A stretch of 64,000 bases of DNA from Amoeboaphelidium protococcarum X5 (taxonomy: Eukaryota > Fungi > Aphelidiomycota), in NCBI GenBank assembly GCA_023515725.1, contig JALDTO010000142.1, forward strand, positions 1-64,000. Reading direction: 5' to 3'. Made by a program: the position numbers and the translations under genes. Of the stretch, positions 2,190 through 11,048 are shown piece after piece. Under the pieces are notes generated by a model, which saw only the letters and a program-made list of their open reading frames with translations, was not told the DNA's origin and did no database searches. Within the stretch, counting starts at the first letter, position 1, and each line of letters starts with the position of its first letter.

Positions 2190-3083
2190 ATGAACAAGAT
2201 TAAAAAGTCTATACGTGATACCCACCGATTAATAAATCGAGATAATACCGATCCTGCTACTAGATAGGAATAGCAGAGGAAGCTGAAAGTCCTCCTCTTT
2301 GATATGGAACAGGAGACCGAGTTGCAGGTTATCAAAAAGTATTAGACGCGTTATTAGCGTGTGAGATTCTTTGAGATGCGAAAAGCTTAGCGAAAGTATA
2401 TGAAATGCCTAAAGGAGGATGTCGCTAGTGCCGAGGCTTAGAATACTCTTGATGATCTGATGTACATTTTATTTTATCCAAAGACTTTCAAGTACATGTC
2501 ACTTTATCGCAATGACTCGATGTAAGATAAAGATAATGAGGATGATGGCGATGATGATGAGCAGTCGAAAAGGTTGAAGGGGAAGAATTAAAAGCTTCTC
2601 GCGTAGAGATAGACAATGTATCAGTTAATAACTAAAGTCTGTAAAGATCTGAATGTCTATGATCGCGTCAAATTTCCAGTCAAATCTCTGAGTGTGCCCA
2701 AGGAGCTGGGTGATGAAGTAAATGCTCGGCTGTTTATTGAAGACTAAACGTTGTTGCTGCAGCATTGGCGTCATTTAGTAATGCGTAATAAGGAAATGTA
2801 CAAATACTGTGGAATAAGTGACTTGGAAGCGTACATAAAGGATAAAGTTAACTGCTTCAGAAGTCCTAAATCTATGGAAAAGGTGGAAAGTATGTAATCT
2901 GTAGGTGTCGGTAATGCATCAGGAGAAGTGGTCGGAGAAGATAGATTAAAATAAGGTGGCTAACAGACACTCCTCAAGGATGATTTTTTGGGCTCTTTTA
3001 GCAATGCTGCTGATGCTGACGGTAAAGCTGTGTCATCGTCTAGACAAGCTCTCGATAAGTACTCGACGCGTTTGAAATTGTGA
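2190..3083 (+). CDS. EFG1: rRNA-processing protein Efg1
   Basis: MNKIKKSIRDTHRL...RYQRVRFFEMRKA...DLMYILFYPKDFKYMSLY are Efg1 motifs. Many in-frame TAR codons, so absent from the ORF track. Ends TGA. Confidence 0.85.
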
Positions 3084-3358
3084 ACTTTCTACTATAATAT
3101 TATTATAAAGTCCTTCACATTACATTTCTAAATTTCTTAATAAAATTACGTTGGGTGTATGTTGTTCAGAGTTTGCCAATCCGATTTTCTATTATGGATT
3201 CGTCCAATGTAAATCGGCTGCTTTGAATCAAGAGAATATCATGCAATCAGATAATCGAAGTTCCATCTGATCTAATATAACAACCATTAGTACATCTACT
3301 TGCTCTTTTTTCTCTTCTTTACTATTATCTGGTCTTATTAAAATTCTTCTTAAAGAAA

Positions 3359-4477
3359 ATGTCCATGTTTAAAATTCTACGTGTGTCTGCAGTTGCTATC
3401 CCACTCCTGAACTTTGTTTCAGGCCACTCTCACTTGGAGTGTACTGACGCCAAAGGTCCTGGTCAATGCGCTGGCTATCCGCGCTATTACTCTCATTATA
3501 AACAAGGCTATGAAGGTAGTGATGAGTCCAAGGACAGAAACTTTATCGTGGCCGCTGGAGCAATTCGCTGTCCCACCGCGCCTGCTGATTCAGGGTAAAT
3601 GTACACTACCAATTACCCCATGGCAAAGTGGATGCCAGGATCTACAGTTGTGGTTTAGTGGCCTCCGCGCGGCCATTTGCAACAAAAGCATTCTGATGTG
3701 TGGATCTATTGCTCTACTGATGCTTCATCTGCCGGTAGTAAAGTTGATGAATAGGCCATCTTCTCTGGCACTCCTGGTGATGAATCTCTCACTTCATCCG
3801 CAGCTACAACAACTTCTGGCGCGTCCAACAACGCGACTGGCGGTATGGAGCTGATTGCCACCACACCTTACGATAATTGCAATGGCTCTGATGTGAGTTG
3901 GGCTAAATGTACGGGCCAAGTCCAGGTCCCATCCACATGGTAGCAAGGTGAAATAAGATCTTGCATGTTCGCCTGGACACTCAATGATGCCCAACAGTAC
4001 ATTGACTGTTTTGAAGTTCAAGTTGGTAGTGGTGGCTTAAATGTCGTCGCGTCCAATAGTAGTGACACTCAGGATCCACGAGCTCTGTTAGGACCATCTT
4101 AAGTTGAAGTTGACAATTCAGTGACTCCTTCTGCACCTCCTTCTGTTGCTGCATCCAGCAACAATAACAGCGCAGCTTCAGCGCCACCATCGTCTCAAGC
4201 AGTTCCACCTGGACACGAAGGCCACAATCACCCTCACAATGTTGTTGCACCAAGTCCTCCTACTCCGTCTCAATCTCCATCTGAAGCCGTTGCCCCTCTA
4301 CAGCAAACTTAAGCCAACTCGGAAGCTTCTGTAAATGCGCCATCACCTCAGCCAATCAACACTGAAAAATCGCTCGAGTAAAAACTGTGTCAATGTGTTG
4401 ACAACTTGTGCACCGGATCTTTGGGAAGTTCTAATCTGTGCTCTATCCTCAAACGTCTTTGCTAGTTTGTAAATTGA
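3359..4477 (+). CDS. Secreted His-brace copper protein (LPMO-like fold) with S/P/T linker and C-terminal Cys-rich module
   Basis: Signal peptide ...NFVSG then HSHLECTD, WPPRGH, CMFAWTLNDAQQYIDCFEV, a low-complexity linker, and LCQCVDNLC...NLC...LC. 372 aa in table 6. Confidence 0.7.
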
Positions 4478-4875
4478 CCTGCCAATGAATGAAATTGTTG
4501 AAAGTATTAGTGAATTGAAGACGATGAAGGATATATATTTTGAATGATGGTTGATGAATAAAAAGTGAATTAGAATTGAATGCGATAGGGACTTATTACA
4601 ATGCAAGCGGTCCACTTACTCTTAAGACCAACGCGTGAAACAAGGATATTAGTTTTGGCATACTGTACATAACAGCAGTGAATTTTCTTCCTTACAGTAC
4701 GATATTGCCTTCCTCTAATCTAACACACTTTCTTCCATAGAAATGTTGCAGTTTTTTATCTAAGTAAGAAAATGCTCCGCAGTATGTTTTATTGCCGTGT
4801 TTTATAAGTTTTAATCGCCCCACTTACTTTAATTCACAATTCTTATCCGAACGCGGATTATTCTACTTTACGGCG

Positions 4876-6115
4876 ATGCCCGAATATAGATTACTTGTGG
4901 ATGTAGAGCTTGACGCGTCTTCAAAATCAAAGATTGAGGATATTTGTGCTCAACTCAGTGGTTATTATCGATTGGAATAAGATTCTGATGATGGACCAGT
5001 ATCGATTGTTATCGGTCATGATCTGAGCGGAACTGCAACGATTTTGTATAATGATTTGATTAATCACGTACTATCCGATTCATCTTTAAATGTGGAATAC
5101 CTGATTAAGTTGAAGCATGATGAGAGGAATGATCTTATTCATAATAGAGAGTCAAGAGAGAAATGGCTGGCGCAGTAGACTGATGCTATATCCCATAGAC
5201 TTTCTCCTGTACTTCGACGTAAAGTTGAGCACTCGCTGTCTGTTATCGCGGACGCTTTCCGATAATACGGCTTTAAAAATCTATCTATAAGTTATAATGG
5301 TGGTAAAGACTGTACAGTTCTTCTGCGATTGCTTTAAATAGGTTGCGCCATTCATTTTACCAACGTTGAGAATGCGACACCAATTGAAAATCGTGAGCCG
5401 TATTATGGACCTGGTTTAATCAATGCTCTCTATATCCGATCTCAATATCCATTCGAAGATGTTGAGAAATTTGTCCACTAAGCATCACAGAGGTAAGAAG
5501 TATCTATACGATTCTGGATTTATATCACTGTATAATCTACTTGTATTCTAATTGTAGCTATAGACTTCGTCTATTTGAATATGACGGGTCAATCAAGAGT
5601 GGGCTGCAGGCGTTCTTATAATAATGGAGTGAATGTTGTTAAAGTCCATCACCATAATCAAGAGCCATCTTTATGGGCACCCGACGTACTGATCCTCACT
5701 GCTGTAAGTATCTATTTTATGAATGTGATCACGTTACGATAATGTATAATTAGAAAGTTAAATTGTTATTGTAGAGCATCTATAGGCATTCAGCCCGACC
5801 GACTCTAATAATGGATGGCCACTGGTGATGCGCGTTAATCCAATCTTGGACTGGTCATTTACAGAAATTTGGCAGTTCATCGACGCGCTCAACGTTCCAT
5901 ACTGCAACCTGTATGACAGAGGGTAATGTATTGTTTTATTTCAAGACTATTTATGCATTGTGTTTATTTGTAGATACACGTCCATTGGTGGTAAGAATGA
6001 TACAATTCCTAATGCATTGCTTGCTGATCCCGAGTTTCCATGCGGATTCAAGCCAGCGCGGTTTATGCCCAGCGATTTGGCAGATATGGAAGAGCGCTCT
6101 GGGAGATTAAAGTGA
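4876..6115 (+). CDS. FAD1: FAD synthase (PAPS reductase family), 4 exons: 4876-5492, 5558-5703, 5775-5922, 5974-6115
   Basis: [48 protein letters not shown]. Three GT-AG introns restore the frame. Confidence 0.92.
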
Positions 6116-8957: not shown

Positions 8958-9107
8958 AATTTCTATTTAGTTATATATGGAATATTAATCTTAAATGAAT
9001 TTTTTGGTTTAGCTTTTATTATCATATCGTAAATAGTTATCGATCAACTAATACAAAAGGTGCAAGGTAAACTATAAAGAGATGCAATAAATTAGTATTA
9101 TAAGTAC

Positions 9108-11048
9108 TCATTAAAGCTGAGATGCGTTCAGACCAAGAGTGTTCAAGAAAATGTTCACCTTCTCTTTGCCTTGTTCTCCTTATCTGCCTATGACTTCAAA
9201 GATTTTATCTCTGAGCTCAGTCACCAACACGCGATGTTACTCTTCATCACAGGCAGGTGATAATGCCGCCAGAAATTACCACACATACGTGTCATCCACC
9301 TAAATTGGTTAAGATTATGCAGATGGCCGTCTGGCACCACCAGCGTTTTATTCACCACCAAACAGAGACTATGACTAGAACAATGGCGGTAGAATCTGAG
9401 CAGGTGGGAATAGACTGACATACCTGGTCTGGAATGCAGCAAATAGAGTAGGAAATAAAGAATTATTCCAAGTATCCAAATCTGCTTATGGAACCTTATA
9501 CGAGCCCTCTTCCACTTTCTAAATGATAATCTGAACACGACTCAAAAGGAGAGTGATAAACAACAGACCCGGCTTAGTTCTACCAATAGACACAATATCC
9601 CCAGTCTAGAGCAGACTCCCACATACATCATTGACGTACGCAAGATCAACATCCCCGATAACATTAGCGAACGGAAACACCACAAAGTTGACATACTCCT
9701 CCAGTTCACGCAATATCAGAAATGCATCACCATTCTGAGGTAGAACAATGGTCTTCAGTGAGAGCATTACGCTTTTCAATAACAGCAGGATCTACTCACG
9801 AGGCAGAAAACGCAAGAAATTACCAATAACTCTTCTACCTTTACCGTACGAACAGAACAGAGATATACCATGCGGAGGTGGAAACTATTTTAGCAGATCA
9901 TTCAAATCCACCTTGTCCACTTCATGCGAGTCTCGTGTTATTTAATGCAAAAGCGTCCATAGAGACTTGACATGACCCGAGTATTTAGCATTACGCTCCT
10001 CCTACTTTCGCGGATTATCAGCAGGGCCATCTTTCTAGAATTCTTAATACAGATCATTGAGGGCAATCAACGTCATATGACAGCGTTCGATACAAGAGAG
10101 AACTTTAAATACGGATTACTGTGCATTATCAGAATCAGATAGTACACCATTCTCAGGTACCAATCTATCAGCAGATGGTAACCTTTTAGGATCTAGTTAT
10201 GCACCATCCTTCACCTCTTCCTCCTTCAAATCAACATTCATCAATTGTTTAGGTCTACGAAGAGAATTTAGCATTGCTCTACCAAGTGCTGGACTTCCAC
10301 TAGATTAAGCTGCTGAACTCTTGGCAATTTTTTACAAGGTATGTAAACGCACCTCCTTCATGATACTCTTCAATTCATCCTCGTTCTTGCTCTTCAACGC
10401 TTCCAAGTCCTGATCAATTACCAGATTAGGATTCTACTTGGCCGCGTTCTGTACCATACTGTTGAAAGCCTTGTTGTAAAAGTCAATCTCAAATGTAGGA
10501 TCCGATGCAAGTTATGACAATTGAATCTTCAAAATAAGATCCTTTTCATAATCCAGCATTAGGCCATCATAATTCTACTGCTGCTGCTGATCAGAGGAAG
10601 TGGCATCGGCGTAAGTTCCACCTTCAATATCATCAGTGGCTGCAGACTCGGATGGAGCAGTTGACGCAACCTCAGCGAGCATTTAAGCCTCAATATCCGC
10701 AGCGCTTAAAGCAGAATCCTGAACAGAAGAAGCAGCTGCAGAAGTCTTAAGTCCAAGCATTTCCGCCTCCAGTTCTTCAACAGTGACTCTCTTGTTATTA
10801 TTACCGCTTGTAATTCCACTTGCTCCGCCGTGAGCAGCAGCAGATACATGACCATGATCTTCCACCTTGACAGGAGCTCCAAATTAAAAATCCTGCTTTA
10901 AATCGCTCACACTAACGCCAAAAGTCTCATCATTATGCTCATCGTCATACTCTCGCAGCGATGCATCGTTCGCAGAGGAGGACTATTGTTGCTATTAAGA
11001 ACTACTACGCGGTACAGAACTAGTATCGAATCCAAAAAAGGAACTCAT
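9108..11048 (-). CDS. PAT1: mRNA decapping activator Pat1
   Basis: N-terminus MSSFFGFDT, NDETFG, KVDFYNKAF, RSVNAKYSG...SSLRRPKQL, C-terminus NIFLNTLGLNASQLQ-TGA. Confidence 0.88.

Follow-up and report, generated by a model that had tools for sequence, protein, structure and literature searches.

The gene at positions 3359..4477 (+) of the window, the 64,000-nucleotide stretch of Amoeboaphelidium protococcarum DNA analysed here, raises the question of whether an aphelid secretes an LPMO that stands apart from the named families, as the first-pass annotation had proposed. With every LPMO family added so far has come, to our knowledge, a substrate or a biological role not seen in the earlier ones. 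Aphelids, the sister group of fungi, enter living algae from a cyst with a chitin wall, and the Paraphelidium transcriptome paper leaves open whether they get in by mechanical or by enzymatic means; that paper and the A. protococcarum dual RNA-seq study report hydrolases and AA15 only. Under standard CAZyme annotation the gene at this locus, a conserved, expressed and predicted-secreted His-brace candidate, carries the label 'hypothetical protein'. Inspection of the window sequence located each of the sequence elements that the first-pass annotation had listed, at the coordinates it had given, and what they may amount to is argued below.

The region 3359..4477 is a single intronless open frame (372 codons plus a TGA stop at 4475-4477) only under a code in which TAA and TAG are read as Gln. 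Eight such triplets lie in frame, at codons 80, 100, 132, 195, 248, 318, 341 and 369, and applying the bacterial code to the region leaves short ORFs only. The translation is identical to a database protein, P0001, which came up when the first stop-free piece was searched exhaustively against proteins and whose 90% cluster holds three NCBI entries, all named 'hypothetical protein [Amoeboaphelidium protococcarum]'. A ciliate origin, which the code would suit, was rejected in view of these names. The genome examined (23.6 Mb in 346 contigs) carries just two copies of the gene, the second of which (C162:197445-198572, -) has 375 codons, 93% DNA identity and a syntenic context, which fits a duplicated or hybrid genome. 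TAA or TAG occurs in either copy at nine positions; six are common to both, while each of the remaining three is matched by CAA or CAG in the partner copy, which shows that TAA and TAG encode Gln in A. protococcarum. These codon swaps between copies are direct within-genome proof of the reassignment.

Transcription of the gene can be read from contigs of three runs of a 2021 study (X6, X10 and X11), which in this stretch are confined to 3257-4537 and cross it without joints. Their identity to the window, 95-96%, marks them as another strain's allele. Run X10 shows non-templated poly(A), with a loose end of 24 A at 3122 where the genome has no A-run, and because of this poly(A) on the upstream gene we regard the three runs as RNA-derived; they are probably the Graesiella/A. 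protococcarum dual RNA-seq. Since RNA-derived runs cover 3257-4537 without joints, the gene is transcribed and unspliced, with a minimum transcript extent of 3257..4537 (+), a 5' UTR of about 100 nt and a 3' UTR of at least 60 nt; as evidence, these contigs of a different strain carry neither expression level nor timing. GC content is 0.44-0.50 across the ORF versus 0.35-0.37 in the flanks. Between the window copy and the C162 copy, dN/dS is 0.075 in the putative catalytic part and 0.04 in the Cys-containing tail; the value of 0.38 in the linker points to relaxed constraint there. The gene is therefore real, transcribed, intronless and under purifying selection, and a chance ORF was rejected on the strength of homologues, selection and RNA evidence.

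The first 22 residues (3359..3424, +) form a predicted signal peptide, with a Lys/Arg n-region, a hydrophobic core, Val at -3, Gly at -1 and predicted cleavage at V-S-G / H. The -3/-1 rule is satisfied in all 14 distinct N-termini of the family, i.e. the window protein and 13 relatives, almost all metagenomic. Each has a hydrophobic leader whose -1 residue is small and whose -3 residue is either small or aliphatic; H-S-H-[LVI]-E-C follows directly, and sequence conservation across the family starts exactly at mature His1. The cleavage suggested by the first-pass annotation, exposing His1 (3425-3427) of HSHLEC, is accordingly predicted both by the -3/-1 rule and by the onset of conservation at His23. 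The mature N-terminus His1-Ser2-His3 (3425..3433, +) would supply a candidate brace His together with a conserved His at position 3. This H-S-H start is present in every member that retains its N-terminus and absent from one distant relative, P0027. A His at position 3 also occurs in ATCUN copper-binding peptides; for the conserved His3 and Glu5 we know of no counterpart in known LPMOs.

The candidate second brace residue, His106 (mature His84) of W-P-P-R-G-H at 3674..3676 (+), had also been picked out beforehand and lies in the loop after strand 74-79. It is invariant in eight full-length domains and nearly invariant among all members, at a position comparable to that of the second His of AA9 and AA15. 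Gln212-x-Tyr214 (mature Gln190 and Tyr192; 3992..4000, +) begins the last strand and offers a candidate second-sphere Gln and axial Tyr. In the family alignment Tyr192 is invariant and Gln190 nearly so, and the Gln-x-Tyr within the previously noted FAW...QQYIDC stretch, with Tyr214 at 3998-4000, is conserved and aligns with that of AA9. Invariant in the eight full-length domains are H1, S2, H3, E5, eight Cys and W79-P-P-R-G-H84, as well as D-x-S-W-A-x-C-x-G, W184, L186, Q190, Y192, D194, C195 and F196. The alignment shows that His1, His84 and Gln190-x-Tyr192 are conserved in the family, and by conservation and alignment the latter three residues correspond to the second His, second-sphere Gln and axial Tyr of the LPMO superfamily.

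The family behind these alignments is small. An exhaustive search with a 79-residue piece returned twelve homologues (E 2e-17 to 1e-5), and two word searches added only P0015, P0025, the fragment P0026 and the distant relative P0027; almost all homologues are unnamed metagenome proteins. A word search with stop-free piece 1 gave no match, as expected from that search's length window, and a scan of metagenome contigs matched the patterns and confirmed a relative in none of them. In P0027 (metagenomic, 268 aa, E 5.9e-8) the Cys, Trp and Tyr of the scaffold are present and His1, His3 and His84 are absent; judged by these residues, P0027 is a natural, apparently brace-less version of the fold.

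We modelled the protein with AlphaFold2. A first model, built from 13 sequences, had a pLDDT of 71 and a poorly defined N-terminus (pLDDT 43). The second, of the mature full length and from 17 sequences, reached 85-91 over residues 1-30 and 84-94 in the core strands; at 17 sequences its alignment is shallow, and the N-terminus is confident in this second model only. AlphaFold2, VIA-align and Foldseek together place an LPMO-fold beta-sandwich at mature residues 1-204 (3425..4036, +), the part with a dN/dS of 0.075, with the eight conserved Cys at mature 6, 15, 49, 96, 152, 162, 180 and 195. A Ser/Thr-rich surface insert (mature 97-140; 3713..3844, +; pLDDT 41-60) varies in length and sequence among homologues.

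In an unbiased VIA-align comparison with 48,161 PDB chains, LPMOs and LPMO-like proteins filled ranks 1-24 (Z 11.3-7.3), ahead of the first chain unrelated to them at 7.0. These ranks comprise AA10 (Z 11.3), AA15 (10.2), AA13 (9.8), AA9 (9.7), AA11 (9.6), fusolin, X325, NIS1, AA14 and AA16. The top 31 Foldseek matches were likewise all LPMO-like (best E 5.6e-5), as were the top 50 when VIA-align was run on Foldseek's matches (Z 10.1-7.4). In the ESM Atlas the nearest entries were two Mucoromycota clusters (LPMO, chitin-binding type-4) and an Ascomycota DUF7492 cluster (TM 0.61-0.64), with bacterial AA10 ranking after them; language-model features gave the same neighbours, a BIM1-like cluster among them. 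Residue 1 of the model superposes in VIA-align on the N-terminal His of solved LPMOs, and the predicted model has the Ig/FnIII-like beta-sandwich of the LPMO superfamily, with the N-terminus at the copper face. The model thus shows an LPMO beta-sandwich fold with the first mature residue on the N-terminal His of solved LPMOs, and the agreement of AlphaFold2 with the Foldseek and VIA-align matches bears out the earlier expectation of such a sandwich. The best structural matches favour no single LPMO family, which fits a separate family.

The best match was the AA10 enzyme ScLPMO10C (CelS2; 4oy7), with Z 11.3, rmsd 3.0 over 147 residues and a Foldseek E of 5.6e-5; however, identity is 14-16% and the LPMO_10 Pfam match is absent, and the window protein has Tyr and Gln where most AA10 have Phe and Glu. 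AA9 (PF03443; AfAA9B 5x6a, TtAA9 9fdl) shares with it the N-terminal His, a second His after a W-containing strand, a Gln-x-Tyr-x-x-Cys starting the last strand in register, and the beta-sandwich (Z 9.7, rmsd 3.4 over 147 residues). In contrast to AA9, the window protein does not conserve the second-sphere His of the I-A-L-H strand, has an eight-Cys pattern of its own and starts with H-S-H-x-E-C, which is not an AA9-type start.

Assignment to a named family was examined with Pfam-A models, a partial stand-in for dbCAN AA9-AA17. Full-length P0001 scored 11.8 bits against AA9 (E 0.23), below the cut-off of 27.8. Among the stop-free pieces the only match was again a weak one to AA9, from the piece with Q-x-Y (13.8 bits, E 0.056, profile positions 153-181), and relatives gave colinear weak AA9 matches, e.g. 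P0003 residues 59-250 against profile 8-186. A sequence search of the PDB with the Q-x-Y piece returned three best matches that were all AA9, with the Gln, Tyr and Cys of Q-x-Y-x-x-C in register. LPMO_10 (PF03067, cut-off 23 bits) gave no match at E up to 1 with P0001 or any of 15 family members, and a DUF3304 match to P0001 was taken as chance. A family profile searched against PDB sequences found no LPMO, and no sequence link to a characterized LPMO family reached significance. The profile's only match, to ribosomal protein uS12 (E 0.007), was taken as chance because it lacks structural or biological support, and the nanobody matches of piece 1 in the PDB sequence search were also put down to chance. 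Genome profile scans with Pfam AA9, LPMO_10 and DUF7492 gave no candidates; they carry little weight, their controls having matched in none or one genome.

The nearest family is DUF7492 (PF24320, cut-off 27 bits), an uncharacterized one, mainly of Ascomycota and with no described function, an Atlas cluster of which is a top structural neighbour (TM 0.64 over 179 residues). P0001 has no match to it at E up to 1, and P0016, a strain variant of the window protein, scores 11.8 bits. Of 15 relatives scanned, 10 match at E 0.008 or better, and two, P0008 (34.6 bits) and P0011 (27.2 bits), pass the cut-off; where the match is N-terminal, the family's His1 always falls at profile position 4. As P0008 and P0011 pass while P0001 fails, the family lies at the edge of the DUF7492 model. 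The proposal of a candidate unclassified LPMO family therefore stands in so far as no Pfam model of a named LPMO family was reached, and has to be tempered in that relatives touch the uncharacterized DUF7492, so that the window protein is not wholly without kin. Literature searches found no paper mentioning DUF7492 and nothing relevant on aphelids together with LPMO or AA18-20. An LPMO-type reading of the family would supply a first functional hypothesis for this uncharacterized fungal domain.

Beyond the sandwich, residues 227-334 (4037..4360, +) form a predicted disordered linker (pLDDT about 33) rich in Ser, Pro and Ala (20, 19 and 15 of 108). It contains, at 4211..4237 (+), the G-H-E-G-H-N-H-P-H cluster already noticed in the first-pass annotation. 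All four A. protococcarum copies retain this cluster, and in several relatives the C-terminus is rich in His. The last 37 residues (4361..4471, +) are predicted to form a helix-loop-helix, with helices at mature 313-330 and 337-349 (pLDDT 66-83). As had been described, five Cys fall within the last 31 residues (344, 346, 351, 361 and 368), arranged as twin C-x6-C pairs, one per predicted helix, plus one spare Cys. One or two C-x6/7-C twin units each occur in P0003, P0010, P0011, P0013 and P0015, and four other relatives have a single Cys near the C-terminal end; from these patterns, most tails of the family have an odd Cys count.

The further idea that the tail is a possibly new binding module found no support: we saw no sign of carbohydrate binding in a predicted two-helix hairpin, a Pfam search of the tail gave no match, and a known carbohydrate-binding module was rejected on that ground. 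In the literature, His- and Cys-containing tails of LPMOs bind copper and dimerize: in CoAA9A a tail Cys drives dimerization and affects host penetration, and in PcoAA14A tail His bind copper and a tail Cys dimerizes (PMC10990093; bioRxiv 10.1101/2025.11.04.686606). Like these, the window protein has a glycosylation-prone low-complexity linker ahead of a short tail containing His and Cys; its His cluster is conserved, and most tails of the family have Cys in odd number. Unlike them, it is predicted to end in a hairpin of helices that two disulfides staple together, and not to be fully disordered there. By analogy, the five-Cys end looks more like the copper-binding or dimerizing tails of some AA9 and AA14 enzymes than like a carbohydrate-binding module.

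Taking fold and conservation together, we lean, with modest confidence, towards the gene encoding a secreted copper-dependent LPMO-type enzyme whose family is small, unclassified and borders on Pfam DUF7492, where copper binding and catalysis are what we infer from sequence and model. Signal peptidase would free His1, whose amino group and imidazole would, with His84, hold one copper ion; Tyr192 would take the axial position and Gln190 would lie in the second sphere. Once its copper is reduced to Cu(I), the enzyme would use O2 or H2O2 to oxidize C1 or C4 of a polysaccharide and so break the chain. The linker His cluster and the disulfide-stapled hairpin with its one free Cys would probably hold extra copper, and, like some AA9 and AA14 tails, linker and hairpin may also tie the molecule to itself or to a partner. 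The target would be one of two, each plausible: chitin in the cyst or germ tube of the parasite, or the wall of its green-algal host. The window protein is on this basis a credible candidate for cutting the wall of the host or of the parasite itself, and the gene a concrete candidate for a part in breaching the algal wall or remodelling the cyst. It is also relevant to pest control, because mass cultures of algae are destroyed by A. protococcarum.

A fuller version of this picture can be drawn more tentatively, and we hold it to be possible, on balance doubtful: the protein would be the founding member of a new LPMO family restricted to aphelids and a handful of uncultured relatives, in which H-S-H combines the brace with an ATCUN-like His3, and the copper-binding His cluster and the thiol hairpin deliver or anchor the enzyme at the cyst germ tube, where the algal wall would be opened oxidatively.

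Not every LPMO fold cuts polysaccharides: X325 proteins, which bind copper and are non-catalytic, and the effector NIS1 have it too and are both among the structural matches. A non-catalytic copper protein like fungal X325/Bim1, capturing or buffering copper at the parasite cell surface, would share with the window protein the fold (6ibh and 6ibi match at Z 7.4-8.5), secretion and the N-terminal His. The BIM1-like cluster among the language-model neighbours points the same way, and metal handling is suggested by the conserved His cluster of the linker, by the His-rich ends of several relatives and by the His at position 3 in H-S-H, as in ATCUN peptides. We nevertheless think this reading unlikely. 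BIM1-like (PF20238) gave no Pfam match at E up to 1, the other Pfam models being silent on P0001 as well, and the C-terminus, ...KRLCQFVN, lacks a hydrophobic tail and with it the GPI-type ending usual for X325. Moreover, the Gln-x-Tyr typical of catalytic AA9 is conserved, and catalytic LPMOs outscore X325 structurally.

A His brace does not guarantee polysaccharide cleavage either, as AA14 and AA16 illustrate; a role in making H2O2 or supporting other enzymes has been proposed for AA16 and is debated for AA14. The window protein might similarly be an atypical His-brace oxidoreductase that cleaves no polysaccharide and instead makes H2O2, or uses another substrate, in support of other enzymes. 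AA14 (5no7, Z 7.7) and AA16 (7ze9, Z 7.3) are among its structural matches, its tail architecture is like that described for an AA14 enzyme, and its variable Ser/Thr-rich insert is located where other families carry surface loops. Structural similarity is, however, higher to the cellulose- or chitin-active AA10, AA15, AA9 and AA11, and the sequence offers nothing specific in favour of such a role, to which we give little credence. Least probable is a secreted wall or effector protein with a metal-free beta-sandwich scaffold, like the Magnaporthe effector NIS1 (8xgl, Z 7.5-8.2): a true relative, P0027, shows by its lack of His1, His3 and His84 that the scaffold can exist without the brace, but the window protein and every close relative keep the three His, Gln and Tyr without exception, and a dN/dS of 0.075 would be unexpected if the brace residues had no role.

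Among these readings the LPMO-type enzyme remains the one we prefer, and its gene can be followed into another organism through its neighbourhood. On a metagenome scaffold (L005), the homologue P0010 lies immediately upstream of a PAPS-reductase-family gene (9071-10144), and matches to that gene in A. protococcarum fall only immediately downstream of both LPMO-like copies. The L005 organism reads TAA and TAG as stops (standard code). The common PAPS-reductase neighbour indicates that the locus is orthologous in an organism that uses TAA and TAG as stops.

The surroundings offer a few further observations. The PAPS-reductase-family gene directly downstream of the LPMO-like gene occupies 5197-6112 (+) of the window, with the same arrangement at the C162 copy; its matches in the window are broken into separate blocks, possibly by introns. 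On L005, 4 kb upstream of P0010, the region 2816-3823 codes for a protein whose N-terminus is hydrophobic and which carries, by Pfam, a tyrosinase domain; tyrosinases are another copper enzyme family. The gene upstream of the LPMO-like gene in the window (2190-3083, +) ends with a TGA stop and is polyadenylated at about 3122 in one RNA run, giving a 3' UTR of only about 40 nt. Finally, a run from a 2013 biofilm metagenome (X5) contains a 2.7-kb contig about 97% identical to the window over the stretch 3000-4900, which indicates that a close strain of the aphelid was present in the 2013 biofilm sample.
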